Position numbers and translations under genes: made by a program | In this document: positions 471 through 28,349 of the stretch, in pieces | How positions within the stretch are numbered: position 1 is the first letter of the stretch | How the letters are laid out: every line of letters starts with the position of its first letter | The notes under the pieces: model-generated | Told to the model about the DNA's origin: nothing | What the model saw: the letters and a program-made list of their open reading frames with translations, nothing else | Databases searched by the model: none | Assembly (NCBI RefSeq): GCF_001194135.2 | Contig: NC_069000.1 | Location: 28,172,917 to 28,236,916 of the forward strand | Origin: Octopus bimaculoides | Taxonomy: Eukaryota | DNA length: 64,000 nt | Direction of reading: 5' to 3'

Positions 471-500
471 ATGTTGTGCAACAGGACGAGCGTCCTAAAG
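471..500 (+). CDS. Microexon A, unit 1 (DVVQQDERPK)
   Basis: tttcacag|30 nt|gtgaga. Confidence 0.9.
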
Positions 501-895
501 GTGAGAGAACTTCAGTTTACGAACTTATCTCGATAGATCTAGCTTTCTATTTAACTACCTCACTATAACTTGTTTGGAAATACGTAACGTATTAATCGAA
601 ATGAATCTTGTTTAGTTGAGATATGCTTGTAATATACAAAATTTGACGTCGCTTTTACCAAAAGTTACTGTTTGTTGCCCCTGTGTAAATGATGGAAGTG
701 AACATATATTGTCACATCGAAGTCAAGATAATGTATTGCCCTGCATTTTATTGCAAACTTTATGAAATATATCTTTAAAATAGGTATATGTATTTTTGTG
801 AATGAATGTTTGGTTATCTTCCTAACTCTATGTAAATATATTATATCCGTATGTGGTGTAAAAGCTGATGATATTGTCTTTCCTTCCATATTCAG

Positions 896-925
896 AACAA
901 CCATCTGAGGCCGATGCCACAGTTG
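896..925 (+). CDS. Microexon B, unit 1 (EQPSEADATV)
   Basis: tattcag|30 nt|gtaagt. Confidence 0.9.
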
Positions 926-1264
926 GTAAGTGTCTCCTAAATTGGTACCGTTTTAATGTAACAAATCTCTATGATTACCAGTTATAGTACATCATTATTA
1001 ATTATATTGTGGGAGTTGTACTAGAAAAATAATCGCTCATTTAATAACTTATTGTTGCGGATTTCTTTTATATAGAAATTGCCGAATTTCTACATAACAT
1101 TTTCAAGTTAAACTATATTAACAAAATTGATAGAAATATTTCTCTACGCATTTTCGTCCGTCACGTCCTTGCTAATATTTAATTGTATCAAACGTCATTA
1201 AAAATCTTGACTGTTGCGAAATGGCCGACGACATAGTTAACGATTTACGTTTTGAATTTCACAG

Positions 1265-1294
1265 AAATTATCAGAGAAACCGAAACTCGCATAG
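1265..1294 (+). CDS. Microexon C, unit 1 (EIIRETETRI)
   Basis: tttcacag|30 nt|gtaaga. Confidence 0.9.
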   Translation, partial: KLSEKPKLA

Positions 1295-1655
1295 GTAAGA
1301 AGATTTGATATTATGGCATAGAGTTACTTAAAATTCAATATATACTGTCCGCATATTTTCCTGTATAAATGTTTTCTCTTAAATTCGCGAATTAATTCTG
1401 AATTTGTTTAGTGAACGTCGGAGCTTTATCAAATAATCATAAATCTGTATTGAATACATAATGATGCTCCATTCAACTACAGACCGAATATGTAACGTTA
1501 ACGTATGAGTGTATCAGTGTAATAAAAGCATTTTACAGAGATCATATGTGGTCTGTTACTTAAGAAGACATATGAACAAACATTTACACATTATATATTT
1601 TCCTATCGAATAATTGAACAACATGCCTATTGTACTTTATTTTGATTTCGTTCAG

Positions 1656-1685
1656 AAAAACCATCTGAAGTTGAATCTACCGTTG
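1656..1685 (+). CDS. Microexon D, unit 1 (EKPSEVESTV)
   Basis: ttcgttcag|30 nt|gtgagt. Confidence 0.9.
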
Positions 1686-3134
1686 GTGAGTCTAATATGC
1701 AATAATTTCATTCGCTTTCAACGTTTAGGCTTACCGTCAATTGTCAGGTATATTAGAAATTGCTAGCTAAAGAAAGTCACGCAAAAATATATTTCATTAC
1801 ACTTAACACAGCCTACTTACACACATACATTCATATGATCACACTGCATGCTATTACGAAAGAAATCAAACAGAGGCACTGATTCCTGGTCCGGATTTAC
1901 ATGAAAAATTTCCATATACTACGCTGCAGAATTGGCGAGCTATCGAGCCATATATGCTATATTAAGAAGGAACACTATATAATACGCAACCCCATTTCCA
2001 ATTCTTTCCATGTCGCACCATATCGTCTTCAGTGTGGTTGTATATTAGACCATTAATGCCCAATTTCTTTTGTTTAATTTATTACCAACAATTCTTATTT
2101 ATACGACTTTATCTCATTCTAAATATATAAAATATATCTTTATTACAATATTTGAATTACATTCCGATGTAGATGACGAACTAAAGTTATCTAAAAGGAA
2201 TACAGGTTTTGCAGAAATATGTTAGATTATCGTTCTGGTCGTTAAAAAAGGACCATGGGGCTAATAGTTTAAGATTGTTGAAAATGCAGAACACTCAGAA
2301 ATATATCCGTGATTTTTTCCACATTGCATTGCGCTTTCTCCACACTCGTGTTTGCTTTGCGAATTTCAAACGTGCTACTTAGCAGTTGCTGGTGTCAAAT
2401 GTTTCGTCGCTTCGTTGTGACAGTTTATTTGTTCCATTTCTTTCATCGTCGTTCAAACGTCTGAATTTCAAAATAGCTGGTAGTATTAGAGAACAGTGAG
2501 CAAACGGAAATACGAGAAATTTTCGAGAATATATTAGACTCGTGTAAAGTTTTTGAAGAATGAACTTGTTTGTAATGTGAAGAAAACGTACTTTTATATC
2601 AATTAAACGCGTGACATATTGCTTCCGTTCAACACATGTATTCTTTGCAGGTTGTATAGCAAAGTGGCAGTTAAACACATTAGTAGCTGCAAAAGAAAAC
2701 AGAAACTAATATGTACATTAAACACACAGACAGACACAACTGCATGTTGGCTTACATACTGACATTTGACATGAGACAATTTCATTCTCGTATGGAAGGT
2801 GGCTATTCCATTTAATATCCTGACTTACACACCGAATTATATATATTAGTAATTACATAATTACCAAAACTTACGAATTTGTCGTATTTGTTACGTAAAT
2901 TAACATTATTTAAAATATAAAAATCATGCGGAAAAGTCCGAGGAGATCGCGATTATATATAGCTGAAATGATTTTTCGCATGGATGATGCAGCAAACTCA
3001 TATTGTCTACACATGTGATTAGAAGGAAGACGTGTAAACGTGAAAAGTGCAACAATGTACAAAATAAACTGCATATATATATATGTGTGTTTGTGTGTGT
3101 TTGTGTGTGTGTGTCTGTGTGGGTGTGCTTATGG

Positions 3135-3189
<55 letters not shown>

Positions 3190-3349
3190 CATTCCTACAT
3201 GTATATATTACTGAAAATATGAGGTGATTTTGAGAAAATTTCAGATCTACAAGACGTAGTTAGCTAATATTCTTCCCTATGTAATTGCCACATAAGTATG
3301 CATTCTTCTTCAAAGCAGCTTTCCAAATATTTAATTACATATTTCATAG

Positions 3350-3379
3350 AAGTTGTAACAGAAAATGTAACGCGCACAG
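3350..3379 (+). CDS. Microexon E, unit 1 (EVVTENVTRT)
   Basis: tttcatag|30 nt|gtaagc. Confidence 0.85.
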
Positions 3380-3711
3380 GTAAGCTGCCGAAGAATCTTT
3401 TCTCGTGATGTGTACCAATAAGCTAGATATGTAACATATATTTCGACGTTAATTCTGTAGTAAAATGAAAGCAAAATTCCTCCGACTAATCAATTTATAT
3501 TTCTTTCATGTAAGCTTTTTCGATTCTGTTAAAATATGACGATAGGTTTGTAAAATGTTTCCTTGAATTGGGGTAACTGGATTAGTGTCGTAAATTTATT
3601 ATTTGAAAACCACTTATTCTATACGAGTTCAATATATTTAATAGTTGTCTGTCATAATAAATAGTGTGATGTAAGTGTTGAGGATTTATATTTACGTTTG
3701 CCTTTCTCTAG

Positions 3712-3741
3712 AAACTCGTTCTCAAGTGGAGTCTACAGTTG
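3712..3741 (+). CDS. Microexon F, unit 1 (ETRSQVESTV)
   Basis: tttctctag|30 nt|gtgagt. Confidence 0.9.
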
Positions 3742-4291
3742 GTGAGTGAGAGATTATTTTCGTGATTTCCTGCTTACGCTTGTTGCTGAGTTACCTTAGA
3801 GAAGTCTTCAAAAATCTTGTTGAAAGGGTATAATTATTCATGAAGAAATAAGTTAATAATTAATGGACGAACGATAGCATGTAAAATATTGAGACGCTGT
3901 GATACTTTATTTGCATTTCAATATAATAGCTTGTAAACCGAGTCGCATTCTACATCTCAAACATATTGTGTAAATTTATCATGTTAGAATTGAATTGCCC
4001 ATGATTATTTGCAGAGAAACTTTATTTGAAAGAAAGTAACTCGTCTGAAAATATATTCACATCGCACTAACGTGTAAATTAATAATAGCAATAAATATTT
4101 CGATATATTTTCTCTGCGCTTCATATATATAGAATGAATTCGTACTGAAAGAATAAAGCGAATCATGCAATGGGAAATCGGTGGCTGAAAATCTGTGCAA
4201 TTGCAAAACAAGATTGATATATTGGTAGAGATTAGTGATGTGTTCATCAGTTCTCAGCATGAAATTCACATTTCATTTAATTATTTCACAG

Positions 4292-4321
4292 ATGTTGTGC
4301 AACAGGACGAGCGTCCTAAAG
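4292..4321 (+). CDS. Microexon A, unit 2 (DVVQQDERPK)
   Basis: tttcacag|30 nt|gtgaga. Confidence 0.9.
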
Positions 4322-4717
4322 GTGAGAGAACTTCAGTTTACGAACTTATCTCGATAGATCTAGCTTTCTATTTATCTCCCTAACTATTACTTCATTGGAA
4401 ATGCGTAACGTTTTAATCGAAATGAATCTAGTATAGTTGATATATGCTTGTAATATATGAAATTTGACGTCGCTTTTACCAAATGTTACTCTTTGTTGTC
4501 TCCCTTCTATATGATGGAAGTGAACATATATTGTCGCATTGAATTTAAGATAATATATTTCTTGCATTTTATTGTAAATCCTTATGAGATATATCTTTAA
4601 AATAAGTATGTGTATTTTTGTGAATGAATGTTTGGTTATCTTCCTAACTCTGTCTATGTATATTATATCTGTATGTGGTGTAATAGCTGATGATATTGTC
4701 TTTCATTCACTATTCAG

Positions 4718-4747
4718 AACAACCATCTGAGGCCGAAGCCACAGTTG
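4718..4747 (+). CDS. Microexon B, unit 2 (EQPSEAEATV)
   Basis: tattcag|30 nt|gtaagt. Confidence 0.9.
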
Positions 4748-5229
4748 GTAAGTGTCTCCTAATTTGGCTACGTTTTAATGTAACAAATCTCTATGATTAC
4801 TAGTTATAGTACATCATTATTAACTTTGAATTTACTATATATTGTGGGACGTGTACTAGAAACATCATCGCTCAGTTAATAACTTAATGTTGCGGTTTTC
4901 TTTTATATAGAAATTATACTCTCCGCGTATTCTCCTGTACAAATGTTTTCTCGTAAATTCGTGAATCAATTCTGAATTCGTTTAGTGAACTCTGGAGTTT
5001 TATCAAATAACTATAGATCTATATTGAAAACACAAACATGCTCCATTCAACTACAGATTGAATATGTGATGTTAACTAATGAGCGCATCATTGTTAGGAA
5101 TGCATTTTGCAGAGATCATATGTCGTCTATTACTTAAGAATAAATTTGAACAAATATTCACACTTTATATCATTTTCTGTCAAATAATTTAGCAGCATGC
5201 TTATCGTAGTTTATTTTGATTTCGTTCAG

Positions 5230-5259
5230 AAAAACCTTCTGCTGTTGAATCTACTGTTG
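5230..5259 (+). CDS. Microexon D, unit 2 (EKPSAVESTV)
   Basis: ttcgttcag|30 nt|gtgagt; exon C of this unit is deleted. Confidence 0.88.
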
Positions 5260-5551
5260 GTGAGTCTAATATGCAATAATTTCATTCGCTTTCAACGCTT
5301 AGGCTTACTGTCAATTGTCAGGTGTATATCAGATATTGCTAGCTAAAAAACGTCACGCAAAAATATATTTCATTACACCTAACACAGCCTACTTACACAT
5401 ATACATTGATATCATCACACTGCATACTATTACAAAGACAATCAAATAGAGGCATTGATTCCTGCTCCGCATTGACTTATAAAGTTTGTACGTATATCAT
5501 TTCTGTATGTGTTGTAAAATCTGATGATATTGTCTTTCATTCCATATTCAG

Positions 5552-5581
5552 AACAACCATCTGAGGCCGAAGCCACAGTTG
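5552..5581 (+). CDS. Microexon B, unit 3 (EQPSEAEATV)
   Basis: catattcag|30 nt|gtaagt. Confidence 0.88.
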
Positions 5582-5914
5582 GTAAGTGTCTCCTGATTTG
5601 ATTTCGTGTCAATTTAAGGAATCTTTTATGATTAGTAGTCGTAGTATATCACTATTAACTATGAAATTATTATGCATACTAAGATGTGTATGAGAACAAT
5701 AATCACCCAGTTTATATGTTGTTCTTTTTCATATGGTAATTACTGAATGACTATGAGTAATTTCATATTCAATTATATTAACAAATTTGATAGAAATTTT
5801 ACCGATATATTTGCGTGTCCTTGGTAACATTGACTGTATAAAGCCTCATTAAGAAGTGTTTCCTTTATAATATGGCCGAAGAGATAGTTAACATTTACGT
5901 TTTCAATTTCACAG

Positions 5915-5944
5915 GAATTATTAGAGAAAACGAATCTCGCATAG
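5915..5944 (+). pseudogene. Inactivated microexon C, unit 3 (donor lost)
   Basis: Followed by GAAAGC where the other C copies have GTAAGC/GTAAGA. Confidence 0.8.
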
Positions 5945-6300
5945 GAAAGCACTTTTGATATAACGGCGCAGTATTACGTAAAATACAATAAATATTTTGC
6001 ACATATATTTATGTATATAATTCTCTGGTAAATTCGTGATAACGTCCTTCGAAAGACTTAGTGAGCATCCGATTTTGTCCAAATATTCGTAAAGTCATTA
6101 TTACAGTCATAAATATGTTCCATTCAACTACAGCTAGAATATGTATTGTTAATATATGTCAGCGTCATTGTAAGAATTGCTTTTAGCAAAAGGTCTTAGG
6201 TGTTCTGTTACATAAGAAGAAAATTGAACATTTACACATACCATTTCCCGTCGAATGATTTATCAATGTGATCATTGTAGTTTATTTTAATTTCGTCCAG

Positions 6301-6330
6301 AAAAACCGTCTGAAGTTGAACCTACTGTTG
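6301..6330 (+). CDS. Microexon D, unit 3 (EKPSEVEPTV)
   Basis: ttcgtccag|30 nt|gtgagt. Confidence 0.88.
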
Positions 6331-7504
6331 GTGAGTGTAATTTTTAAGGATTTCATTCGCTTTCAATGTTTGGCTTTTCAGTCAATTGTCAGGTATATTA
6401 GATGTATATTATTGCAAGCTAAGCCAAGTCACGCAAAAATACATTTGACTATGCCTAATTCTCCCTACTTACACATGCATCGATATGCAGCGTCCTGCAT
6501 GCAATCATACACAACATCAAATAAAGAGCCTGCTATGTAGTCGTGATTTATATGACAAATCTCCATATGCTACCCTCCAGATGTTATGCACTGTCAAGCC
6601 GTAACCGCTGTACTTAGGCCTGTCCCGATATAACATAGAACCCCAGTCCAAATTATTTACATATTGTACCATATCATGTTGAAAGTGTCTTGTATATTAA
6701 AAGTTCTGAAAATGCAGAATACTCAAGAATATGTTACTTTCACATTGTATCGCGCTTTCTTTACACTCGTCTTCGTTTTGCGAATTTTCAATCTGATTAT
6801 CGGTTGTTGGTGTCATATGTTTCTTTGCTTCGTTGTGACAGTTGATTTGCTTCTTTTGCTTTACCGTTGTCTCCACGTCTCTATTTCAAATTATCCGGTA
6901 ATATTACAGATGGATGTGTGTAGTATAATAAGAAAATAATGCGAGTCTAAAGTGCACAACTATAAAGTGCTTGGGGAATTTATTTGTCTGCAAGACGAGG
7001 ATGATTGACATTTGCACGACGTAGAGCAAAGTGATATTTGCACACAATAGCAGCTGGAAGAGAAATACTATAACTCAATATTGAAAACACAAATGTACAA
7101 ATGCAGATTTTTTTAAACAGTAACAATTCTCATTAGGCTATTTCTTACTACAATTAACTGTAAAGTTTCCATTTAATATACTGATTTACATGCCGAATTT
7201 TTTATAACTGTATCCGTATACTATGTTAATAAATATGACTTGATATATAGAAATCATGTAGAAAATTCCTAGGAAATTGCGATTATAGATATGCAGAATC
7301 ATATAGTGTAAACATCTGAATAGATGTCTTGTAATTGCTCACATATATCTCATATTGGCCAGAGTATAAAACGACAATTAACCAAGATGGTGAATATCTA
7401 GAAATGTTTGCCCCTTTGCTTTGACATATGCTAATAATTGCGTCAATGATTGTGTCCAGCTTCGCTATGTAAATGGAAATTTAGGATTACTAAATTAATT
7501 AATG

Positions 7505-7530
7505 CTTCGTGGAAGTAGAATCTATAGTTG
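7505..7530 (+). pseudogene. Truncated microexon F remnant (acceptor and exon E deleted)
   Basis: ...ggaagtagaatctatagttg|gtgagtgaga matches the 3' part of F; the upstream sequence is D-E intron with no in-frame acceptor. Confidence 0.75.
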
Positions 7531-8043
7531 GTGAGTGAGAGATTATTTTCCTGATTTCCTGCTTATGCTTGTCGCTGAGTTTCCTTAGAGACGTCTTCCT
7601 ATATATTTGCGGAAAGAGAATAATATTTCATTATGAAATAAGCTTGTGAGTAATAGAAGAACGATAGCGTGTAAATGTTTGAGATGTTTTGCTTTATCGC
7701 ATTTCAATAATATTTTTTGTAAAATTTCTCGTTTCCTTAATCTCAATTACACTGTTTAAATTTATAGTTTAACTAAAATTTAAGTGTGTATGATTGATTA
7801 GATAGACATATTAACTGAGACAAAGAAACTTGTTTCGAAATATATTCACTTGACATTATTTTGTCAAATAGTGATCGCCATATATATTTCGATATATTTT
7901 CTCTCACTTCATATATATGAAATGAAAGTGAACTGAAGGAATAAGGCGAATCATACAATGTGAATTCAGTAGGTAAACAGTATTGAAATTGCAAAGTTTG
8001 ATTGGTTGGCATAAAATTGACATTTCATTCAATAATTTCAACA

Positions 8044-8073
8044 ATGTTGTGCAACAAGACTAGCGTCCTAATT
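8044..8073 (+). pseudogene. Inactivated microexon A, unit 4 (acceptor lost, in-frame TAG)
   Basis: Preceded by tttcaaca instead of tttcacag; GAC GAG changed to GAC TAG at 8061-8063. Confidence 0.85.
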
Positions 8074-8421
8074 GTAAGAGTGCTTCTGTTTACGAGTATA
8101 GATCGATATGCTTAAATTTCTATTTAACTACATAATGGTCTTGCGAAATTAATGTAGTATAGTTGATAATTTGTAATTGTATAAAGTTCTAGATCACTTT
8201 TACCAACCGCTCCTATTTAAAACCACCTATTCAGATGATGGAACTGATTCATAATAATAAATTTTGCGGAATTTTATTGCGTATCTTTATAAAACATCTT
8301 CCAAAAGAGGAAAGTGTAGTTTTGAGAATGAATCTTTGGTCACTTGCTGACATCTGTCTACGTATATGTTATCTGATTACGGCATAAAATCTGATGACAT
8401 TGTCTTTCATTCCATATTCAG

Positions 8422-8451
8422 AACAACCTACTGAGGCCGAAGCAACAGTCG
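8422..8451 (+). CDS. Microexon B, unit 4 (EQPTEAEATV)
   Basis: catattcag|30 nt|gtaagt. Confidence 0.88.
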
Positions 8452-8798
8452 GTAAGTGTGTCCTCAATCGATTCCGTATAAATTTAAGTAATCTCATATA
8501 ATTAGTCGTAGTATATAGTTATGAATTTTGAAATTATCATACATGCTAGGAGGTGTATAAGAGCAATAAACGCCCAGTTTCTAAGTTGCTTTTATGTTTT
8601 TCTTTCATATAGTAATTACCGAATTCTTATGTAATTTTTTCATATTCAGTTACATTGACAAAATCGATAGAAAAGTTTATCCATCTATTTGCGTGTCACC
8701 TCCTTGGTAACATTTAAGTATGTAAAGCCTGATTAAGAAATGCTCCCTTTACAATATGGTCGAAGAAATAGTTAACGTTTACGTTTTCAATTTTACAG

Positions 8799-8828
8799 AA
8801 ATTGTTAGAGAGACCGTAACTTGCATAG
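8799..8828 (+). CDS. Microexon C, unit 4 (EIVRETVTCI)
   Basis: ttttacag|30 nt|gtaagc. Confidence 0.85.
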
Positions 8829-9199
8829 GTAAGCACTTTTGATATAACAGCATAATATTACTTAATATACAATACATACTCTCCGCATATTGTCATGCTT
8901 AAAAATCTCTCGTAAATTCGTGATAATGTCCTTCAAATGCCTTCTAATTGGCTTCAGTGAGCAGCCGATTCTCTCCAAATATTCGTAAAATCTATATTGT
9001 AGTCATAAACATGTCCCATTCAACTATAGATAGAACATGTATTAACATATGTGAGTGTCATTGCCAGAAATGCATTTAACAAAAGATCATAGGTGTTCTG
9101 TCACATAAGAAGAAATTTGAACAAATATTTACACATTATATCATTTTCCGTCGAATGATTTAGCAACGTGTTTATTGTAGTTTATTTATTTTCGTTCAG

Positions 9200-9229
9200 A
9201 AAAACCATCTGAAGTTGAATCTACTGTTG
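9200..9229 (+). CDS. Microexon D, unit 4 (EKPSEVESTV)
   Basis: ttcgttcag|30 nt|gtgagt. Confidence 0.9.
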
Positions 9230-11320: not shown

Positions 11321-11350
11321 ACGTCGTAATAGAAAAAGTAACTCGTGCAG
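11321..11350 (+). CDS. Microexon E, unit 4 (DVVIEKVTRA)
   Basis: tttcacag|30 nt|gtaagc. Confidence 0.87.
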
Positions 11351-11728: not shown

Positions 11729-11758
11729 AAGCACTTTCTGCAGTGGAATCTACAGTTG
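11729..11758 (+). CDS. Microexon F, unit 4 (EALSAVESTV)
   Basis: tttctctag|30 nt|gtgagt. Confidence 0.87.
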
Positions 11759-12298: not shown

Positions 12299-12328
12299 AT
12301 GTTGTGCAACAGGACGAGCGTCCTAAAG
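12299..12328 (+). pseudogene. Probably inactivated microexon A, unit 5 (acceptor deleted)
   Basis: Exon sequence is intact but preceded by tagaattg rather than tttcacag; the nearest upstream AGs give 35 or 58 nt (out of frame); donor is GTGGGA. Confidence 0.75.
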
Positions 12329-12669: not shown

Positions 12670-12699
12670 AACAACCATCTGGCGTCGAAGCCACAGTTG
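12670..12699 (+). CDS. Microexon B, unit 5 (EQPSGVEATV)
   Basis: catattcag|30 nt|gtaagt. Confidence 0.9.
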
Positions 12700-13048: not shown

Positions 13049-13078
13049 AAATTATTAGAGAAACCGAAACTCGAATAG
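13049..13078 (+). CDS. Microexon C, unit 5 (EIIRETETRI)
   Basis: tttcacag|30 nt|gtaagc. Confidence 0.9.
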   Translation, partial: KLLEKPKLE

Positions 13079-13428: not shown

Positions 13429-13458
13429 AAAAACCATCTGAAGTTGAATCTACTGTTG
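13429..13458 (+). CDS. Microexon D, unit 5 (EKPSEVESTV)
   Basis: ttcgttcag|30 nt|gtgagt. Confidence 0.9.
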
Positions 13459-14517: not shown

Positions 14518-14574
<57 letters not shown>

Positions 14575-14576
<2 letters not shown>

Positions 14577-15428: not shown

Positions 15429-15458
15429 AAGTCGTAACAGAAAAAGTAACTCGTACAG
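15429..15458 (+). CDS. Microexon E, unit 5 (EVVTEKVTRT)
   Basis: tttcacag|30 nt|gtaagc. Confidence 0.9.
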
Positions 15459-15785: not shown

Positions 15786-15815
15786 AAACACGTTCTGAAG
15801 TGGAATCTACAGTTG
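15786..15815 (+). CDS. Microexon F, unit 5 (ETRSEVESTV)
   Basis: tttctctag|30 nt|gtgagt. Confidence 0.9.
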
Positions 15816-16372: not shown

Positions 16373-16402
16373 ATGTTGTGCAACAGGACGAGCGTCCTAA
16401 AG
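16373..16402 (+). CDS. Microexon A, unit 6 (DVVQQDERPK)
   Basis: tttcacag|30 nt|gtgaga. Confidence 0.9.
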
Positions 16403-16807: not shown

Positions 16808-16837
16808 AACAACCTTCTGAGGCCGAAGCCACAGTTG
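16808..16837 (+). CDS. Microexon B, unit 6 (EQPSEAEATV)
   Basis: catattcag|30 nt|gtaagt. Confidence 0.9.
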
Positions 16838-17187: not shown

Positions 17188-17217
17188 AAATCATTAAAGA
17201 AACGGAAACTCGCATAG
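17188..17217 (+). CDS. Microexon C, unit 6 (EIIKETETRI)
   Basis: tttcacag|30 nt|gtaagc. Confidence 0.9.
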   Translation, partial: KSLKKRKLA

Positions 17218-17553
17218 GTAAGCACTTTTGATATAACGCCATAGTATTACATAATATACAATACATACTCAACGTATATTGTCATACATAAAATTACTTC
17301 GTAAATTCGTGATAATGTCCTTCGAAAGACTTCTAATTGACTTCAGTGAGCATCCAATTCTCCCAAATATTCGTAAAGTCTATATTGCAGTTATAAATAT
17401 GTTCTATTCAACTACAGAAAGAATATGTATCGTTAACATATGTAAGTGTCATTGCAAGAAATGCTTTTTGAAATAGGTCATAGGCGTTGTGTTACATTAG
17501 AAGAAATTTGAACAAATATTTACACATTATATCATTTCACGTCGAATGATTTA

Positions 17554-18785
17554 TTGGGTTCCTGCCCTTTTTTAAAATTTAAAATAATAAAAAATAACAA
17601 CTAATTAATCAATAATGTATTCACCCTTGTTGTTTACAACTTCTTCCCAACGTTCAACAAGATTTTCAATAACTCGTTGGTAGAAATCACCCGATTTCGA
17701 CTCAGTTCTGCATCAGTATTGAACGAAATTCCGCGCATAGCATTTGAAAGAGATCGAAAGAGGTGGAAATCCGTTGGTGCCAAATCAGAAGAGTACGATA
17801 GGTGTGGCAGCACTTCCCAGCCATGCGTTTGAATGGCTTCCTTGATCATATTGGCGATATGAGGGCGGGCGTTGTCGTTCAGTAGAAGAACTCCATGCTG
17901 CCGATTAGGTCTTTTCTCTTGAATAGCCATGTTGAGTCGTTCCATCTGTTGAACATAGAGTTCCGCGTTGACCGTTTGGTTCCGTTCAAGCAATTTGTAA
18001 TGGATAATTCCTTCCCAGTCCCACCATACGCACAACATCGTTTAACGCGGATGAAGATCTTGTTTCACGCGTGGTGTCACTTGCTTACCGTGGCTAAGCT
18101 ATTCCTTACGCTGCTTCATATTGATTACAGGCACCATTTTTCGTCGCCAGTAACGGTTCGGTAAAGAAATCGTTGCTTGTGTCCATGAGCTGAGCGGTGA
18201 CGAGCAAGCAAACTAGCGGAGATTATAGCTCGTTGATTTTTGTTGTTGTCACTTAAAGCATGCGGAACCCAAGCTCCATACTTCTGAATCTTTCCCATCG
18301 ATTGAAAATGTTTCTCAATAGCAGTGTGGGAGCATTCCATTTCTGCCAGTTCCCTTGTCATTTGACGAGAATTTTCGTACAAAAGTTGGTTCGCTCTTCA
18401 TCGAACGCAACTGGACGGTCAGAACCAGGTGCGGCTTTGAGGTCAAAATTTCCATTTTTGAACTTGGCATACCAATCACGAGCGGTTCTTTCAGCTATGG
18501 CACCCTCTCCATACACAGCACAAATGTTGCGAGCAGCTTTTGCGACCTTAGAACCTTGATTAAAAGCAAAAAGAAGGAGGTGTCGAAAATGCTTGCTTTT
18601 CTTAACTTGACATTCCATTTTAATGATCTGAAAATAAACAAAAATTAACTAAAATTAACTAAAAAAAAAAATAGATTCCAAAACAATTCAAAAATAGAAT
18701 TCTCGAAAAAAATAAATTCCAAAATTTAAAAACGCAATAAATTCCAAAATTTAAAAAAAGTTGGGAACTTTGTTGCCAACCCAAA
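17554..18785 (-). mobile_element. Mariner (DD34D) transposon with frameshifted transposase
   Basis: ORF fragments carry the mariner HTH N-terminus, WVPHAL, TGDEKW, MLCVWWD, DNARPH and DLAPTDFHLF; TA duplicated at 17552-53 and 18786-87; paralogous units show the empty site gaatgatttagcaa. Confidence 0.95.
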
Positions 18786-18825
18786 TAGCAATGTGCTTAT
18801 TGTAGTTTATTTTAATTTCGTTCAG

Positions 18826-18855
18826 AAAAACCAGTTGAAGTTGAATCTACTGTTG
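18826..18855 (+). CDS. Microexon D, unit 6 (EKPVEVESTV)
   Basis: ttcgttcag|30 nt|gtgagt. Confidence 0.88.
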
Positions 18856-20417
18856 GTGAGTGTAATTTACAATGATTCCATTCGCTTTCAATGTTTGTCT
18901 TTTCTGTCAATTTTAAGGTACATTATTGGATGTATATTATTGCAAGCTAAACCAACTCACGCAAAAAATACATTTGATTAAATCTAATTCCCCCTACATA
19001 CACATGCATCGATATTCAGCATCCTGCATGCAATCAGACACAGCATCAAATAGAGACACTGTTATGTAGTCCTGATTTACATGAGAAATCTCCACATGCT
19101 ACCACCCAGAAGTGATGCATTATCGAGCCGTAAATGCTATACTGAGTCCTGTCTCAATATAACACGCAACCCCAGTCCAATTTATTTACATGTCGTACCA
19201 TATCATGTTGAAAGTGGCTTATACATTAAAAGTCCTGAAAATGCAGAATACACAAAAATATATTCATGTTACTGTCACGTTGTATTGCGCTTTCTTTACA
19301 CACGTCTTCCTTTGGCGAATTTTCAATGTTCTGATTATCGGTTGTAGCTTCTTTGCCTCGTTGTGACAGTTAATTTGCTTCTTTACCTTTATCGTCGTCT
19401 CAACGTTACTATTTCAAAATATCTGGTAATATTAGGGATGGTTGCTTGTAGCATAATACGAAAATAATGCGAGTGTAAACTAGACACTTTTAAAAAGTTT
19501 GTGGAACTAATTTGTTAGTAATATTAAGATGATGCTTTTTATATAAATTTAACGTGTCACATATTTTCCATTCAACACGTGTTGTATGCACGATGTATAA
19601 CAAATTTGTCGTTTAATGGATAAGTTGCAGAAAGAGAAATACTAACATACATGGCATGAAAAATCAAGCAGACATAAATGCGCACTTCCTTAAATACTAA
19701 TATTGAACAGGTGGCTATTGCTGACTCCAAATAACCGTAAAGATTCCGTTTAATATACTGATTTATATGCCGAATTTTATATATCAATATTTGCTCAATT
19801 TCATAAATTTATGATTTAGTTGAATTTGTTATATCAATAAACATTGTTTAATCATACGAAAAAGTCCGATGAGATTGCGATTAATGATAGCTGAAATATA
19901 CTTTAATATCTATGTTGCAGTAAATGTATATGGTGTAAACATCTGACAAGACATCTTGTAATTGCTCATATATTTCTGATGCTGGCGAGAGTACATATCG
20001 CCAATTAATAATGAATGTCAAGAAAGTTTTCTCCCTTTTCTTTCTCATATGCAAATAATTGCGGCAATGATTGTGTCTTGCTACGTAAATGGAAATTTAG
20101 GATTTCTAAATGAATTATCGCATCATTATATATTTTCGAAATGTGTAGTTTCCTGTATAGATGCATACACAAGATACAGATGGGTTTTTATGTGTGTGTG
20201 TGTGTGTGTGTGTGCGTGTGCGTGCGTGCGTGCGTGCGTGCGTGCGTGTATCTGTACATATATATGTAAGATTATACATATATGTATATATATTATAGAA
20301 GTTGGGAGATAAGCCCAAGTAGGTATGTTTGTATGTATATCGTTTCCGTTCAACACGTGTGTCCTTTGCACGATGTTCCTTGTATATAAGTATACACAAG
20401 GTAAAGATGCGTTTATA

Positions 20418-20453
<36 letters not shown>

Positions 20454-20888
20454 TGTATGTATGTATGTATGTATGTATGTATGTAGAGGGTTGGTCAAAA
20501 GTCACCTGACAGTAAATCAAAATTTAATTCCAAGATTTATTCACATTTAACAATTGAATGAATTTAATAAAAGCATCTAAATATGAAAAATCATGATGAT
20601 TATTCAAACTGAATTTTTTCTTTTGCGACACATATTTCTATTCGAGTGAATACAAAATTATCGATAATATTTATGGAATTTTGTGTTACTGTCGGATGAC
20701 AGTTGGCCAACACGATATGTTTGTAGGTATGTGTGTATATATTTTATACAGTAACATATTAGTGTTTTTGAAAAGAATTGACGACTAGTTAGCTAATATG
20801 ATTCTCCGTATAATCTCTAACAATATTATGCACTCTGCTGTAAAGCATCTTTCGAAATATCTAACTACATATTTCGTTAATTTCACAG

Positions 20889-20918
20889 AAGTTGTAACGG
20901 AGAAAGTAACTCGTACAG
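20889..20918 (+). CDS. Microexon E, unit 6 (EVVTEKVTRT)
   Basis: tttcacag|30 nt|gtaagc. Confidence 0.9.
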
Positions 20919-21242
20919 GTAAGCTACTGAAGAATTTTTTTCGTGATGAGTATCAACAAGCTTGATATATAGAAATTTTTTCTGTGATAATTGTTTAGTA
21001 AAATGAAAGCGAAATTCCTACGATAATTCACTTATTATTTTCTTCATGTAAACATCTTCTATTGTAACAAAGTGTGACGAAAGGTTTTTCAAAGTGTTTT
21101 CTGATGGTGGGGCAATCGGATTAGTTTTCGTAAATTCTACCATTTGGAAACCACTCACGAGTTGAATATATTTAATGCTTGTCACTCATATATTCTGTGA
21201 TGTAACAGTTGAGGGAATATATTTACATTTACATTTCTCTAG

Positions 21243-21272
21243 AAACACGTTCTGAAGTGGAATCTACAGTTG
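21243..21272 (+). CDS. Microexon F, unit 6 (ETRSEVESTV)
   Basis: tttctctag|30 nt|gtgagt. Confidence 0.9.
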
Positions 21273-21832
21273 GTGAGTGAGAGATTATTTTCGTGATTTT
21301 TTGCTTATGCTTGTCACTGAGTTCTTTTAGAGAAGTCTTTCAATGTGCTTGCCGAAAAAGTGTAATATTTCATTACGAAATACGATAATGCATAATAAAA
21401 GAACGATAGCATGTGAAAGAATGAGATTTTGCTTTCCTTTACCACATTTCTATTATATACGTTGGAAATTTTGTCGGCTCCTAAATCTCAGTAATATCAT
21501 TCAAATTTATCTTTCAATTAAAATTTAAGCGCATATGATTTATTAGAGAGAGATAATTGTTGAAAGAAAGAAACTCGTTTCGAAATATATTCACATGGTA
21601 TTACTGTGTAAAATGATAATTGAAATAAATATTTCGATATATTTTCTATGCGCTTGAAATATATGTAATAAAATCGATCTGAAAGAACAAGACAAATCAT
21701 ACAACGTGAATTCAGTGGGTAAACAGTATTGAAATTGCAAAGGTAGATTGATATATCAGTCGTGATGAAAGGCTAGTTACATATTCATCAATTCTCTGCA
21801 TCAAATTGAGAATTCCTTCAATTATTTCACAG

Positions 21833-21862
21833 ATGTTGTGCAACAGGACGAGCGTCCTAAAG
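21833..21862 (+). CDS. Microexon A, unit 7 (DVVQQDERPK)
   Basis: tttcacag|30 nt|gtgaga. Confidence 0.9.
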
Positions 21863-22286
21863 GTGAGAGAGTTTCTGTTTACAAATACAGCTCGATAGAC
21901 CTAAGTTTCTATATACATATGTTTCTATATACCTACATATATATAATTGTTTTTGCTAGTGCGCAAAGTATAATGCGAAATTAATGTAGTATAGTTGATA
22001 TATGCTTGTATTTGTATCACGTTGAACATCACTTTTGCCAAATGTTGCTGTTTGTATCACCCTATTAACTGATGGAACTGAACGTATATTTTCAAACTGG
22101 AAGTCCTTTGAATTCATAATTATATATTCTGTTGAATATTATTGCAAAACGTTATAAAGTATCTCTTAAAATTAGAAAGTGTAGTTTTGAGAATGAATCT
22201 TTGATTATTTTCTTACCTCTGTCTATGTATATCATATCTGTATTCCGTGTAATATCTGATGATATTGTCTTTCATTCCATACTCAG

Positions 22287-22316
22287 AACAACCATCTGAG
22301 GCCGAAGCCACAGTTG
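22287..22316 (+). CDS. Microexon B, unit 7 (EQPSEAEATV)
   Basis: catactcag|30 nt|gtaagt. Confidence 0.9.
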
Positions 22317-22666
22317 GTAAGTGTCTCCTGTTCTTATTCCGTGTAAATTTAACAAATCTGTTATGATTGTTAATATACCATTATTAATTTTGAAATTATT
22401 ATACATATTAGGTGTATTAGAACAATAATCACCCAGTTTATAATCTATTCTTGTAGTTTTCTTTTATATAGTAATTTTTGAATTTCTACGTAATATTTTC
22501 ATATTCAATTATATTAATAAAATTGATAGAAAAGTTTACCGAAGTGTATTGCGTGTCACTTTCTTGGTAACATTTAATTGTATAAGGCATCATTAAGAAT
22601 CCGGTTTTTATTTATTTACGAAACGGCTGAAGAGTTAGTTAACGATTTACGTTTTCAATTTCACAG

Positions 22667-22696
22667 AAATTGTTAGAGAAACCGAAACTCGCATAG
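22667..22696 (+). CDS. Microexon C, unit 7 (EIVRETETRI)
   Basis: tttcacag|30 nt|gtaagc. Confidence 0.9.
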   Translation, partial: KLLEKPKLA

Positions 22697-23064
22697 GTAA
22701 GCACTTTTGATATAACGGCATAATATTACTTAAAATACAATATATGCTCAGCGCATAATTTCATGTGTAGTAATTTTCTCGTAAATTCGTGATTACTTCC
22801 TTCGAAAGAATTCTTAATTACTTCAGTGATCGTCCAATTCTTTTCACATATTTTAAAATCTATATTGTAATCATAAACATTTTCAATTCAACTATACATA
22901 CAATATGTATTGTTAACGTATGAGTGTCCTTGTAAGAAATGCTTTTGCAAAAGATCATTGGTGTTCTATTACATAAGAAGAAATCTGAAAATTTACGCAG
23001 TATATAATTTCATGTCGTATAATTTAGCAACGAGCTTATTGTAGTGTATTTTAATTTCGTTCAG

Positions 23065-23094
23065 AAAAACCAACTGAAGTTGAATCTACTGTTG
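23065..23094 (+). CDS. Microexon D, unit 7 (EKPTEVESTV)
   Basis: ttcgttcag|30 nt|gtgagt. Confidence 0.9.
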
Positions 23095-24378
23095 GTGAGT
23101 GTAATTTGCAATGATTTCATTCGCTTTCAATGTTTGTCATTACTGTCAATTGTCAGGTATATTAGATGTATATTGTTGCAAGCTAAACCAAGTCACGCAA
23201 AAATACGTTTGATTAAACCTAACTCTCCCTATTTACACACATGCATCGATATGCAGCATCCTGCATGCAATCACACACAGCACCAGATAAAGACACTGCT
23301 ATGTAGTCCTGATTTACATGAGAAATCTCCGTATGCTACACTCCAAAAATACGAGCTATCGAGCCGTAAATCCCGTACTGAGAAGTGTCCCAATATAACA
23401 TGCAGCGCCAGTCCGAATTATACACATATCGTACCGTAACATGTGGAAAATGGCCTGCATAGTAAGTCTCTTGAGAATACAGAGTGCTGAGAAATATGAT
23501 CGCGTTATTTTCACGTTGCATTACGCTTTCGCTGTCCTTGTGTTGGTTTGGCGAATTTTAAATTTCTTAATTAGTTGTTTTTAGTGTTAGATTTTTTTTT
23601 ACTGTGTGACAGTTAATCTGGTTGTTTTCCCTTCTCGTTGACTCCACGTCTGAATTTTTTAAATATCTGCTAATATTAAATATCTTTCCATGGAGGATAA
23701 TACGAAATTAAATGGGAAATTAAGGTGCAAAGTTATTTTAGGATTTACTTTGTCTTTAATGTAAGTATGATTTGGTTTGATACAAATGTCACATCTCATA
23801 TATCATTTCCATCAGACACAGGTTTACTTTGCATGATGCATAGGAAAATTATTATCGCACACACCTGTAGCTTAAAGTGAAATACCAACACACACAACAT
23901 TCAAAATACTAAGTGATAAAATGCATACATGCTTAAATACTAACAATGGACATGAGTGGATTGTATTCGTCAAATAATTGTAAATTGTCTCTTTAATACA
24001 CCGATTTATATGCCTAAATTTCTATTGAAGATGTTGAATTTTGTCACATTTACTACGTTCGTGAACAAGATTGTAATATGCAAGTCGTATGGAAAAGTCC
24101 GATTGCTATGTCGGATGGCTTAAATATTCTTTTTATGTGTACTGCAGCAACGTATATCTCAGTTCTTTTCTTGTAATTGCTGAATTATTTCTCATGTTAC
24201 CCATTTTATTGACTTCAATTGTAGAAGGCCTTAATCATTAATTTGTAAATATTCTTTTCTCTTTGTTTTGTCATACAATAATGATTGCTGCAATGACTGT
24301 GTCCTGATTCACTAATTCACTATATATTTTTGAAATTTGTAGATAGTTTTATGCAGACATGCATATATCCCTTAGAGG

Positions 24379-24428
<50 letters not shown>

Positions 24429-24638
24429 TGTATTACAAAAATATTTCTTTATTGCCCACAAAGGGCTAAACATAGAGGGGATAAACAAGGACAGACAAGG
24501 GGATTAATTCGATTAAAATATTAAACGAATACATGTAATTATGCTAGCATAAGTTTCTATATAATCGCCACATAACTATGCATTCTGTTGTAAAACATAA
24601 TTCGAGATATTTAACTACATATTTCGTTAATTTCACAG

Positions 24639-24668
24639 AAGTCGTAACGGAAAAAGTAACTCGTACAG
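24639..24668 (+). CDS. Microexon E, unit 7 (EVVTEKVTRT)
   Basis: tttcacag|30 nt|gtaagc. Confidence 0.9.
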
Positions 24669-25001
24669 GTAAGCTATTGCAAAATGCTTTTTGCGATATC
24701 TATCAATCTAAATATATCACAATCTACACTGCGATAAGTTTTTGATAAATTGTAAGCTAAATTGCTGCAAAAATTAGTTTATCTTTTCTTCGTGTAAACA
24801 CTCGCCGTTCTAGTAAAGTGTCACTATATGTTTTCAAACTGATTTCTGATGGTGAAATAATTGGATTAGTTTTCGTAAATTTATCATTTCAAAATGACTC
24901 TTAAATATTCAATTCTAGCTGAATATATTTGATGCTTCTTACTTATATATGGTGTGTAATGTAACTGTTGAGGGTTTATATTTACGTTTGCCTTTCTCTA
25001 G

Positions 25002-25031
25002 AAACACGTTCTGAAGTGGAATCCACAGTTG
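25002..25031 (+). CDS. Microexon F, unit 7 (ETRSEVESTV)
   Basis: tttctctag|30 nt|gtgagt. Confidence 0.9.
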
Positions 25032-25583
25032 GTGAGTGAGAGCTTATTTTCGCAATTTCTTGCTTCTGCTTTTCGCTGAGTTTCCTTAGAGATGTCTTCC
25101 ATTGTAATTCTGGAAAGACAATATTGACTTATTACGAAATATAGTAATAATTAATGAAAGAACGACAGCATTATATCACGTTTGTGCGGTTTATTTTATC
25201 ACATTTCAATAATATACCTCATCAATTAGCTGGTGTCTTCACTCTAAATTTATATTGCTGAAACTTGTAGTTGATTGAAATCTTGACGTGCGTGTGATTG
25301 GTTAGAAAGACATAGTACTTGAAACATCGTTACTCATTTCAAGATACATGCGACCAAGCATTTTATGCAAAAATAATTGCATGGAATTTTTAAAAATTTA
25401 TTTTCTCCGTGCGATGAAATTTATAATCAAAATCTGTTTGAAATCTTAAAACTATTCAAATAAGGCAAATTTTACAGTTTGGTAATTAAAAAAGTATATT
25501 GTTATAGGAGTAGAGATAACGTGTTATATGCATATTTCTGATCTCTCGATAGTGAATGTTAATAATGTTAAATTATTTAACAG

Positions 25584-25613
25584 ATATTGTAACACAGGAG
25601 GAGCGCCCAAAAG
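25584..25613 (+). CDS. Microexon A, unit 8 (DIVTQEERPK)
   Basis: tttaacag|30 nt|gtgaga; diverged but still in frame. Confidence 0.9.
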
Positions 25614-25670
25614 GTGAGATAGCATCTGTTTCATTAGTCTTAATTTGCTCCTAAATACATTAAAATCTTA

Positions 25671-25713
<43 letters not shown>

Positions 25714-26089
25714 AAAGTAAGAAGAAAAAAGCGAAAATATACAGATAGATAGATATAATTTCCTCTGCATATATGTAAAAAATAATACACAATTAATGCT
25801 GTTTTCATGATAGATACTGGTAATTTTATGAAGTTTCACATATCGTTTCCCAAGTATTAGAGTTTATCGCCTTCCTTCCAAAATTATGGAACTGAATATA
25901 CATAGACACATTCAAACCACTTTGAATTTGTGACAGTATATAATTTGGAATGTTTTTCCAAAAATTTCAAAAGTACTCCTTAATGATAGGAATGCTAAGA
26001 ATTCTCGATTATTTGCCTCTATATTCTATTTATATTATATCTGTACTTGGTGTAAAAGCTGATAATATTGACTTTCATTCCATATTCAG

Positions 26090-26119
26090 AACAACCATCT
26101 GGGGTCGAAGCCACAGTTG
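26090..26119 (+). CDS. Microexon B, unit 8 (EQPSGVEATV)
   Basis: catattcag|30 nt|gtaagt. Confidence 0.9.
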
Positions 26120-26470
26120 GTAAGTGTCTTCTCACTTGATTCCGTGTCAATTTCAATTTAGCAAATGTTTTATGAATATTAGTCGTAGTATACCATTATT
26201 AATTTTGAGATTGATACACATATTTGGAGGTATATTAAAGCCATAGTCGCACAATATATGAATTATTTATATAGGAATTATTGAATTTTCACGTAATATT
26301 TGTATATTAAATTATAGTAAGTGATTGATAGAACTGTTTAGTGATCTTTGGTAACATGTAATTGAATCACCTACTTGGTAATATGTAATTGAATGAAGAC
26401 TCTTTATGAATTGTTTCTTTTACGAAATGGCGGAAGAGATAGTTAACGATTTACGTTTTAAATTTCACAG

Positions 26471-26500
26471 AAATTATTAGAGAAACCGAAACTCGCATAG
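26471..26500 (+). CDS. Microexon C, unit 8 (EIIRETETRI)
   Basis: tttcacag|30 nt|gtaagc. Confidence 0.9.
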   Translation, partial: KLLEKPKLA

Positions 26501-26874
26501 GTAAGCACTTTTGCTATGGTAGCACAGTATTATTTTAAATATAATATATACTCTGCGTATATTTTCATGTATAAAACTTCTCGTAAATTCGCGATAAAGT
26601 CCTTCGAAACATTTCTAACTTGCTTCAGTGTGTGTCCATTTTTGATCAATTATTTGTAAAGCTTATATCGAATCGATAAATATGATCCGTTAAAATAGAG
26701 ACTGAACATGTATGGTTACGAAATTAGAATAACATTGTAAGAAATGCCTTATGAAAAAGTTCATAGCTTTTCTGTTATATTGGAAGAAATTTAAACAAAC
26801 ATTTACACTTTAAGTGTTTTCATATTGCGTAATTTAGCAAAGTGCTTATTATGGTTTATTTTAATTACGTTTAG

Positions 26875-26904
26875 AAAAACCGTCTGATGTTGAATCTACT
26901 GTTG
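26875..26904 (+). CDS. Microexon D, unit 8 (EKPSDVESTV)
   Basis: tacgtttag|30 nt|gtgagt. Confidence 0.87.
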
Positions 26905-28319
26905 GTGAGTCTATTTTGCAATAATTTCACTCGCTTTTAATGACTAGCTTCACTGTCAATTATTAGGTATAGCAGATGTATATTATTGCTAGCTAAACCA
27001 ATTCATACAAAATACGTATGTATATCATTACACCTCTTATTTACCCACATGCTTTCATCAGTATAATCCCGCATAGAATCAGACACAGAAACATATAAAT
27101 GTATTGCCCTCTAGTCCTGATTTACAAGAGAAATATTCATATGCTATCTTCCAGAAGCGACGAGCTGTCGAATCATAAATGCTAACCTGAGAATTATCCC
27201 AATATAACACGCATCTCTGATCTTAATTATTCATATTTTATGCAGTATCAAGTGGATATTGACTTGTATATCAGGACACCGCATAATGCAGATCTTGCAG
27301 AAATAGTTTTGTTTATTTCCATGCGGTTTTACGCTTTGTCTTCATTCCTTTTATATTTGGATAATTTAAAATTTGATAATTAATGGTTGTTGGTGTGAAA
27401 TTTTTCTTTGTTTGGGTGTAACAGTTAATTATTTTCTTTTCTTTTGACGTCGTCTCAATGTCTGAATCTCATGACAGAGAGTATTATATAACAGCAAGTT
27501 AATGCTGAATACGAAAGTATTACGGTGGTAAAATGGACGCATAAAAAGTATATTGAATATTACATTGTCTTTAATGAGAGGATTATTTACTATGACATAA
27601 ATGTTGCGTCTCAACGTTTCCATAACATACGTCTGATATATATCATAATTTGGAGGAAAACGCCTGGTACACACACCATTATCCCAAAGTTAAATATTAC
27701 TATAACCAACATGAAATACACCGGCACAAACTCACGTGCACCTATATTCTAACACTACACAACACATTTCTTTCTGTATCTAACAACGAATTTTCCGTTT
27801 AATATACTGATTTACATGCTGAATTTTCTTTATGAAGAGTTACATAATTTCAAACTCATTACGAAATAGAATAACAAGTGATATAAGAAGAGCACTGTGC
27901 AATAGACGTTTTAAATGTTGTGTTGTTTTATCGCATTTGAATATATTGCGCGTAATTTTTTTCAATTACTGGATGTAAAATTTATATTGTTTTATCTTGT
28001 GTTTCAATTAATGCCTGAAGTCCGTGTAATCGATTAGCGAGAGCTATGTTATGAAACGTAGTAACTCTTTTCACAACATTTGTACACGTCTTTTCCTGCT
28101 AAAATAGTAATTGCAAGAAAGATTTTTTCATTTTTATCTCCACGCTTCTAATATATTTCAAATAGAGTGAAAATGTAAGACGATTCATAAAATGGGAGTC
28201 TTACTAGTTAAACAGCTTTGCAATTAAGTGTTTGTTAATATGTTTGCTGATATGATGTGTAAGTTATATATTGATCAATTCTTGGCATTGAATTTTTATT
28301 CCATTCAATTATTTCACAG

Positions 28320-28349
28320 ATATTGTGGCACAGACCGAGCGTCCAAAGG
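28320..28349 (+). CDS. Microexon A, unit 9, last copy (DIVAQTERPK)
   Basis: tttcacag|30 nt|gtgaga. Confidence 0.88.

Follow-up and report, generated by a model that had tools for sequence, protein, structure and literature searches.

A tandem array of 30-nucleotide, same-phase exons in Octopus bimaculoides that probably encodes a repetitive, acidic protein segment

Does a 28-kb run of very short, equally long exon-like segments in Octopus bimaculoides encode protein, and if so, what kind of protein would it be? The segments occupy positions 471 to 28349 of a stretch of 64,000 nucleotides (nt) from NCBI RefSeq assembly GCF_001194135.2 (contig NC_069000.1, positions 28,172,917 to 28,236,916 of the forward strand), which is the whole of the DNA analyzed here and is referred to as the window. 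The window is AT-rich (GC 0.29-0.42), and TA and TG microsatellites are abundant in it. Judging from the genomic sequence, we consider it probable (roughly 80%) that the segments are the 3' part of a genuine plus-strand protein-coding exon array in a cephalopod gene.

The array was delimited by scanning the 64-kb window for stretches that fit the pattern AG-(A N28 G)-GT and are open when read in phase 1. The plus strand yielded 47 matches, 38 of which lie within 471-28349, fall into six recurring classes and have pyrimidine-rich acceptors; the other nine are scattered, have poor acceptor tracts and are put down to chance. Under a strict filter (YAG acceptor, at least 12 of 20 pyrimidines, GTRAG donor, open frame), 37 matches were returned, all of them inside the array, with none on the plus strand between 28401 and 64000 (35.6 kb) and none on the minus strand. 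Thirty nt was also the only enriched exon length, giving 37 matches versus at most six for any other length between 9 and 120 nt. The acceptors of the 38 exons read CAG (31) or TAG (7), with 73% pyrimidines at positions -20 to -4, and the donors seen are GTGAGT, GTAAGC, GTAAGT, GTGAGA and GTAAGA. The introns of the array measure 292-2091 nt, with a median of 396.

The ends of the exons are as uniform as their length. Exons start with AA (31 of 38), AT (6) or AC (1), and the final base is G in every one, so each junction codon is GAA, GAT or GAC and encodes Glu or Asp. All 38 are symmetric (phase 1-1), so that splicing any of them to any later one preserves the frame, and the spliced 38-exon product is a single open frame of 380 codons, with the other two frames rich in stops. 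The initial annotation of this locus, made from the letters of the sequence, had described 38 intact 30-nt exons between AG and GT sites, each with A first and G last, and our scan of 471-28349 recovered exactly these. Its further statement that any subset of exons would splice in frame with E or D at the junctions follows from the phase and the end bases. It had also placed part of the array outside the window on the 5' side, and this too was borne out: positions 264-328 of the nhmmer model for one of the classes, class F, match window positions 3-67 (E = 2.7e-9), i.e., the downstream flank of an F-class exon is in view, and the array therefore extends past that edge.

Comparison of the copies with one another clearly points to purifying selection on the peptide they encode as well as on their splice sites and 30-nt length. 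The copies of each class were aligned with 150-nt flanks, and divergence was counted from substitutions only. Identity is 0.86-0.92 in the exons, 0.81-0.94 over the 20 nt that precede the acceptor and about 1.0 across donor positions +1 to +6, and it is 0.42-0.77 in the distal intron; the corresponding divergence between copies is 0.101 for exons, 0.074 for splice-proximal sequence and 0.279 for distal intron. None of the 180 exon columns contains a gap, versus 387 of the 1818 intron columns (Fisher p = 3e-18). Within classes, synonymous divergence (pS) is 0.18 and nonsynonymous divergence (pN) 0.075, for a pN/pS of 0.41, and the variable sites are distributed 11/11/28 over codon positions 1, 2 and 3. 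When four whole repeat blocks of the array were aligned without guidance from the exons, windows of at least 85% identity fell almost only on the six exons, and the other conserved intronic blocks were few and not exon-like.

As a neutral yardstick, we took the proportion of intronic 34-nt windows that keep their four boundary bases and are free of insertions and deletions, which is 35%. Against this expectation, the 43 exon copies include 38 that are intact (binomial p = 7e-13). There is 100% identity among four class A exons, while their introns are ~70-75% identical, and the synonymous divergence (0.18) is below that of the distal intron (0.28). The initial annotation had taken the same-phase coding microexons to be real, and this is strongly supported by the confinement of conservation to exons and splice sites, the lack of insertions and deletions in exons, the codon-position bias and the pN/pS below 1.

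The array has a regular internal architecture. The exon classes recur in the order A-B-C-D-(long intron)-E-F with a period of ~3.75 kb, each block specifying 60 amino acids (aa), and there are about seven blocks; the period is lengthened where transposons or microsatellites sit. The class consensus peptides are DVVQQDERPK (A), EQPSEAEATV (B), EIIRETETRI (C), EKPSEVESTV (D), EVVTEKVTRT (E) and ETRSEVESTV (F). The elements of the array are given below; each intact exon is 30 nt long and on the plus strand and was found by the pattern scan.

3-67, plus strand: F-class downstream intron flank (nhmmer), the exon itself lying upstream of the window
471-500, plus strand: class A exon, DVVQQDERPK
896-925, plus strand: class B exon, EQPSEADATV
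1265-1294, plus strand: class C exon, EIIRETETRI
1656-1685, plus strand: class D exon, EKPSEVESTV
3350-3379, plus strand: class E exon, EVVTENVTRT
3712-3741, plus strand: class F exon, ETRSQVESTV
4292-4321, plus strand: class A exon, DVVQQDERPK
4718-4747, plus strand: class B exon, EQPSEAEATV
4900-5004, plus strand: class C downstream-flank remnant with the exon deleted (nhmmer, C model positions 211-327 only)
5230-5259, plus strand: class D exon, EKPSAVESTV
5552-5581, plus strand: class B exon, EQPSEAEATV
5915-5944, plus strand: class C pseudo-exon, first base A to G and donor GT to GA
6301-6330, plus strand: class D exon, EKPSEVEPTV
7512-7530, plus strand: class F pseudo-exon, the 3' 19 nt and a GTGAGT donor left, 5' half and acceptor replaced
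8044-8073, plus strand: class A pseudo-exon, acceptor AG gone, in-frame TAG, last two bases altered
8422-8451, plus strand: class B exon, EQPTEAEATV
8799-8828, plus strand: class C exon, EIVRETVTCI
9200-9229, plus strand: class D exon, EKPSEVESTV
11321-11350, plus strand: class E exon, DVVIEKVTRA
11729-11758, plus strand: class F exon, EALSAVESTV
12299-12328, plus strand: class A pseudo-exon, its 30 nt equal to the consensus, acceptor TG (upstream flank replaced), donor GTGGGA
12670-12699, plus strand: class B exon, EQPSGVEATV
13049-13078, plus strand: class C exon, EIIRETETRI
13429-13458, plus strand: class D exon, EKPSEVESTV
15429-15458, plus strand: class E exon, EVVTEKVTRT
15786-15815, plus strand: class F exon, ETRSEVESTV
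16373-16402, plus strand: class A exon, DVVQQDERPK
16808-16837, plus strand: class B exon, EQPSEAEATV
17188-17217, plus strand: class C exon, EIIKETETRI
17553-18686, minus strand: mariner-type transposon remnant in the C-to-D intron, outside the gene product (minus-strand open reading frames with mariner transposase motifs)
18826-18855, plus strand: class D exon, EKPVEVESTV
20889-20918, plus strand: class E exon, EVVTEKVTRT
21243-21272, plus strand: class F exon, ETRSEVESTV
21833-21862, plus strand: class A exon, DVVQQDERPK
22287-22316, plus strand: class B exon, EQPSEAEATV
22667-22696, plus strand: class C exon, EIVRETETRI
23065-23094, plus strand: class D exon, EKPTEVESTV
24639-24668, plus strand: class E exon, EVVTEKVTRT
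25002-25031, plus strand: class F exon, ETRSEVESTV
25584-25613, plus strand: class A exon (diverged), DIVTQEERPK
26090-26119, plus strand: class B exon, EQPSGVEATV
26471-26500, plus strand: class C exon, EIIRETETRI
26875-26904, plus strand: class D exon, EKPSDVESTV
28320-28349, plus strand: last array exon in the window, class A (diverged), DIVAQTERPK, with a GTGAGA donor

The six classes belong to two alternating types, with A, C and E sharing 14-20 of their 30 nt and B, D and F sharing 21-25, and the flanks of the classes within each type have mostly diverged. From this exon-to-exon identity, we infer a history of two exons becoming six and six becoming about forty. The starting point would have been an ancestral pair of 30-nt exons, type X encoding [E/D]-V-V-x-E-x-x-T-R-x and type Y encoding E-x-P-S-E-V-E-S-T-V, and this two-exon, 20-aa unit would have tripled into the six-exon block A to F (60 aa, ~3.75 kb), which would then have been amplified about seven times through tandem duplication. 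Such a series would make a clean case of a protein lengthening by tandem duplication of exon blocks under selection. Between blocks, the long D-to-E introns are homologous at only 67-83% identity, which indicates that the duplications are old and are not an artefact of assembly. The match to the class D model is split in one block (17444-17553 and 18686-19007), from which it follows that the mariner remnant was inserted in the upstream flank of that exon D.

The first ~120 nt of the long D-to-E intron are unusually conserved. About 60 nt into this intron (about 23146-23156) there is a pyrimidine tract followed by AG/GT(A), kept in three of the four aligned blocks, and this juxtaposed AG/GT(A) resembles a recursive splice site.

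Four copies are broken and one, the class C exon near 4900, is deleted, all of these decayed copies being clustered in 4.9-12.3 kb. Since all the exons are symmetric, the broken and deleted copies leave the reading frame open, and the evolutionary loss of copies appears for this reason to have been tolerated.

If the array is translated as predicted, its product would be an acidic, V/T/E-rich stretch of at least 380 residues inside a larger protein. The acidic 380-aa product put forward in the initial annotation was recovered with a composition of E 89 (23%), V 65 (17%), T 54 (14%), S 30 (8%), R 25 (7%) and P 23 (6%); Lys makes up 5%, there are two Gly, and F, H, M, W and Y are absent. Charged residues make up a fraction of 0.38, with a net charge of -0.15 per residue, and the mean hydropathy of 0.41 is below the Uversky boundary of 0.47, placing the product on the disordered side. 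Pro, Glu, Val and Lys together account for 51.6% of the residues, and Pro, Glu, Val and Thr for 60.8%. Most likely it is a spacer or entropic spring resembling PEVK/PEVT, extended and intrinsically disordered, to which each exon would add 10 residues, or ~3.6 nm of contour length. An example of a junction-spanning peptide of the predicted product is TETRSEVESTVDVVQQDERPK.

Database searches returned no relative of this product. Among 5.8 billion protein clusters, no homologue was found for the 380-aa sequence (E<=1e-3) or for a 190-aa sequence (E<=10), the PDB search gave nothing meaningful, and Pfam gave sub-threshold noise only. Literature searches on the peptides of the array, cephalopod microexons, octopus or mollusc PEVK and tandem arrays of symmetric exons found no published description of it. 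A 21-mer of exon D did match metagenome sequences (loci L008-L031, e.g., L009 at 124-354), but the only match is to a gut-bacterial protein with (EVESTVEAPSELPT)n repeats and was set aside as a coincidence of low-complexity sequence. The bacterial protein, found on human-gut and other metagenome contigs, consists of 14-aa tandem repeats with a 42-nt period and no introns, and what it has in common with exon classes D and F is 21 identical nt in a row and the heptapeptide EVESTVE.

How would such exons be recognized? Splicing is probably intron-defined, given that the exons are very short and the introns have a median of ~400 nt. The strong consensus sites and the low synonymous divergence would then reflect a density of splicing signals. 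A length of 30 nt is below the size usually thought to permit simultaneous recognition of both splice sites, which would make the array, if expressed, a useful substrate for work on microexon recognition and ordered intron removal.

It is possible, though we would put the chance clearly short of even, that these exons are skipped in regulated combinations and that the spacer's length or charge is thereby adjusted by 10 aa at a time from one tissue or stage to another. The exons are all phase 1-1 with interchangeable ends, and five copies have been lost in evolution with the frame intact, suggesting that individual units are dispensable. The low pS (0.18) relative to the distal intron (0.28) and the four identical class A exons fit an additional constraint at the RNA level, as is common in regulated exons, although the same low divergence could be explained by the density of enhancers required of any 30-nt exon or by short-tract gene conversion. 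Precedents are offered by RBM20 acting on vertebrate titin PEVK and by the omission of PEVK exons from Drosophila sls in flight muscle (PMC6469411, PMC3575840, bioRxiv 10.1101/2024.09.30.615857). However, the splice sites are uniformly strong (CAG/TAG, 73% pyrimidine tracts, GTRAG) and would suit constitutive inclusion equally well, and no conserved intronic regulatory motif was found, the few conserved intronic blocks being unremarkable.

A more specific version, which we regard as rather unlikely, is that the gene encodes a hitherto undescribed cephalopod protein, perhaps part of the cytoskeleton of the muscular hydrostat or of obliquely striated muscle, whose acidic spring is set in 10-residue (~3.6 nm) steps by combinatorial skipping among at least 38 interchangeable 30-nt exons. 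If true, this would be the most regular splice-tunable length ruler known, and it would provide a natural test of how the spliceosome recognizes long runs of exons whose size does not permit exon definition.

At the 3' end of the array, no further copy was found by the nhmmer class models on either strand of the window after 28495, and the next gene in view is the following:

33037-33457, 43345-43460 and 45574-46257, plus strand: SNX21, with PX and TPR domains, in three exons

The best match of this gene is SNX21 of a cuttlefish (Acanthosepion pharaonis), at 75% identity. The downstream plus-strand open segments and open reading frames gave no match to Ig, FN3 or any other domain except for pieces of transposase, and the upstream part of the array's own gene lies outside the window.

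One explanation for this arrangement would be that the array supplies alternative upstream coding exons to SNX21, the resulting long isoform joining an acidic N-terminal repeat to the PX domain. Both lie on the plus strand, with 4.7 kb between the end of the array and SNX21 exon 1, and exon 2 (from 43345) has a phase-1 acceptor and starts with AA, so that an array donor would join it in frame and again encode Glu. Such a phase match is, however, expected by chance about one time in three, and exon 1, which carries an ATG of its own in phase 0, would be frame-incompatible as an internal exon. Cuttlefish SNX21 transcript contigs show ~130-160 nt before the ATG with no repeats, the 10 kb upstream of the cuttlefish gene contain no 30-nt exon array, and the homologues in other molluscs are 230-380 aa long and lack the acidic repeat, making a fusion very improbable. 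It is less far-fetched, but still unlikely, that the array is dead or dying, i.e., a once-coding repeat, such as a truncated 3' duplicate severed from its terminal exon, in which the conservation records past selection. The array does come to an abrupt end at a class A exon, and the interval before SNX21 contains nothing but microsatellites, a mariner remnant and an inverted repeat of 141 nt; its decayed copies (four pseudo-exons, one deletion) are clustered in 4.9-12.3 kb, and no homologous protein came up in the databases searched. Yet 38 of 43 copies are intact despite ~28% intron divergence, the codon-position bias and the pN/pS of 0.41 persist among them, and the window holds only the 3' part of the gene, such that a distant terminal exon, or an SNX21 nested in one of its introns, is possible. 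Least credible of all is a non-coding tandem repeat (a satellite, a transposon-derived sequence or a small-RNA host gene) or an assembly artefact that inflates the copy number. Tandem units of several kb with interspersed transposon fragments would suit a repeat of this kind, and host-gene arrays with short exons are known, but conservation peaks at the 30-mers and their splice sites rather than in the introns, and there is one open frame with a third-position bias. A small-RNA host gene was rejected, as Rfam and tRNA scans returned no match and the conservation lies on exons with a coding signature, and so was a minus-strand gene, the reverse strand having no canonical splice sites and no match to the strict filter. 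Duplication in assembly was likewise rejected: the D-to-E introns of the blocks are only 67-83% identical, and copies whose introns differ by 17-33% are not collapsed or duplicated reads.

Several points nevertheless weigh against a functional coding array. The case for coding is built on genomic sequence, and the predicted disorder on composition. The four broken copies mean that some decay has already occurred. The last exon (28320-28349) keeps its donor but has no recognizable downstream partner, and the array ends 4.7 kb before an unrelated gene. The negative searches of the protein clusters, the PDB and Pfam leave the reading without cross-species support; the databases include cuttlefish transcriptome contigs but apparently lack the species of the window. 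The signal of selection was measured among paralogues and thus covers the time since duplication, with which a recent death of the gene is compatible. With these points counted in, a genuine coding array encoding a disordered spacer is still the reading we prefer.

The remainder of the window contains several further elements. The SNX21 exon 1 donor (33456-33459) and exon 2 acceptor (43343-43346) are both phase 1, giving a G/AA junction like that of the array, which is probably a coincidence. Intron 2 of SNX21 carries a degraded, partial copy of exon 3 (LFSISEI-YSEEFANFFHLKEVQTASSLI) at 44160-44243 on the plus strand, ~1.4 kb upstream of the real exon. Besides the mariner/Tc1-type transposase remnant inside the array (17553-18686, minus strand), there are others at about 30000-30957 (plus) and 55335-56316 (plus); the remnants show either Pfam matches to HTH_Tnp_Tc3_2 and DDE_3 or motifs like those of mariner. 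The inverted repeat between the array and SNX21 (29576-29864, 141 nt, 89% complementary, 7-nt loop) resembles a miniature inverted-repeat transposable element (MITE) or foldback element. An open reading frame fragment at 52498-52857 (plus) matches the Pif1 helicase 2B domain and is probably a Helitron remnant, and a 279-aa Ser/Asn/Lys-rich open reading frame at 60652-61491 (minus), without a Pfam match, possibly represents a large exon belonging to some unrelated gene. Runs of N at 50680-50689 (10 bases) and 58473-58524 (52 bases) are assembly gaps.

For gene annotation, the array marks a class of gene that pipelines based on open reading frames, and many that are evidence-based, miss or mask as repeats, and cephalopod proteomes may lack such proteins as a result. 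It is plausible that annotation based on open reading frames would overlook this array, as standard tools often miss the short repetitive exons of titin PEVK (PMC6469411).

Several known systems are built from short exons, and the array can be set beside each. Tropoelastin and the fibrillar collagens are structural or elastic proteins with many short cassette exons of uniform phase that arose from tandem exon duplication; elastin exons split codons after the first base, and the collagen unit exon is 54 nt. The array shares the short cassette exons of uniform phase, the origin by tandem exon duplication and, with elastin, the position of the codon split. Its composition is quite unlike theirs, with two Gly in 380 aa, no Gly-X-Y as in collagen and no alternation of hydrophobic G/V/P/A exons with Lys-Ala cross-link exons as in elastin, and its exon size is 30 nt. 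The neuronal microexon programme (Srrm3/4, eMIC-dependent) involves exons of at most 27 nt that have a UGC motif a short way before the acceptor; the array was not placed in this programme, its exons being 30 nt and TGC occurring in the -30 to -1 consensus of class F only.

The micro-exon genes (MEGs) of schistosomes are, to our knowledge, restricted to flatworms; they are small genes for secreted proteins, and their exons differ in size and are not repetitive in sequence. Their coding sequence is mostly made of very small symmetrical exons that yield in-frame variants through alternative splicing (PMC4350168). All 38 exons of the array are likewise very small (30 nt) and symmetric (phase 1-1). 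In contrast to the MEGs, the array repeats exons of one size in a long tandem series, and the database searches found no protein similar to it. Neither a signal peptide nor the ends of the gene are in view here, the 5' end lying outside the window.

With the I-band titins of invertebrates (C. elegans TTN-1, Drosophila Sallimus and those of molluscs), the array has in common a richness in P, E, V and T, which make up 61% of its product; the PEVT composition of TTN-1 may be one such likeness. The PEVT/PEVK-like regions of these titins are proposed to be springs, whose presence in insects is controlled by splicing, and molluscs carry two titin genes (bioRxiv 10.1101/2024.09.30.615857). However, the PEVK of Sallimus is encoded in a few very large exons, e.g., ~4 kb of exon 32 (bioRxiv 10.1101/2024.09.30.615857), whereas the array uses microexons, and encoding by microexons is thus not general among invertebrate titins.

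The closest parallel in architecture that we discuss is the PEVK region of vertebrate titin (TTN), in which more than 100 short, repetitive, frame-compatible exons, in duplicated and triplicated blocks, encode an E/V-rich, disordered, elastic segment that is ~70% Pro, Glu, Val and Lys (PMC6469411). Exon skipping sets the length of this spring (PMC6469411; PMC3575840). The array matches it in its 38 short, repetitive, frame-compatible tandem exons and its six-exon blocks repeated about seven times. It differs in that all of its exons are 30 nt, whereas the lengths of PEVK exons vary; in its lower content of Pro, Glu, Val and Lys (51.6% vs. ~70%), with much Thr, Ser and Arg and little Pro (6%) or Lys (5%); and in the lack of detected sequence similarity and of Ig or FN3 exons downstream in the window. 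The likeness to titin PEVK and to schistosome MEGs drawn in the initial annotation therefore holds for gene architecture but does not extend to sequence homology, for which the searches found no sign, and membership of the array in either family is not established. What makes the array notable next to these systems is its strict 30-nt regularity together with its orphan sequence, and, if expressed, it would be an independent, non-vertebrate and unusually regular case of a protein segment built from interchangeable mini-exons.

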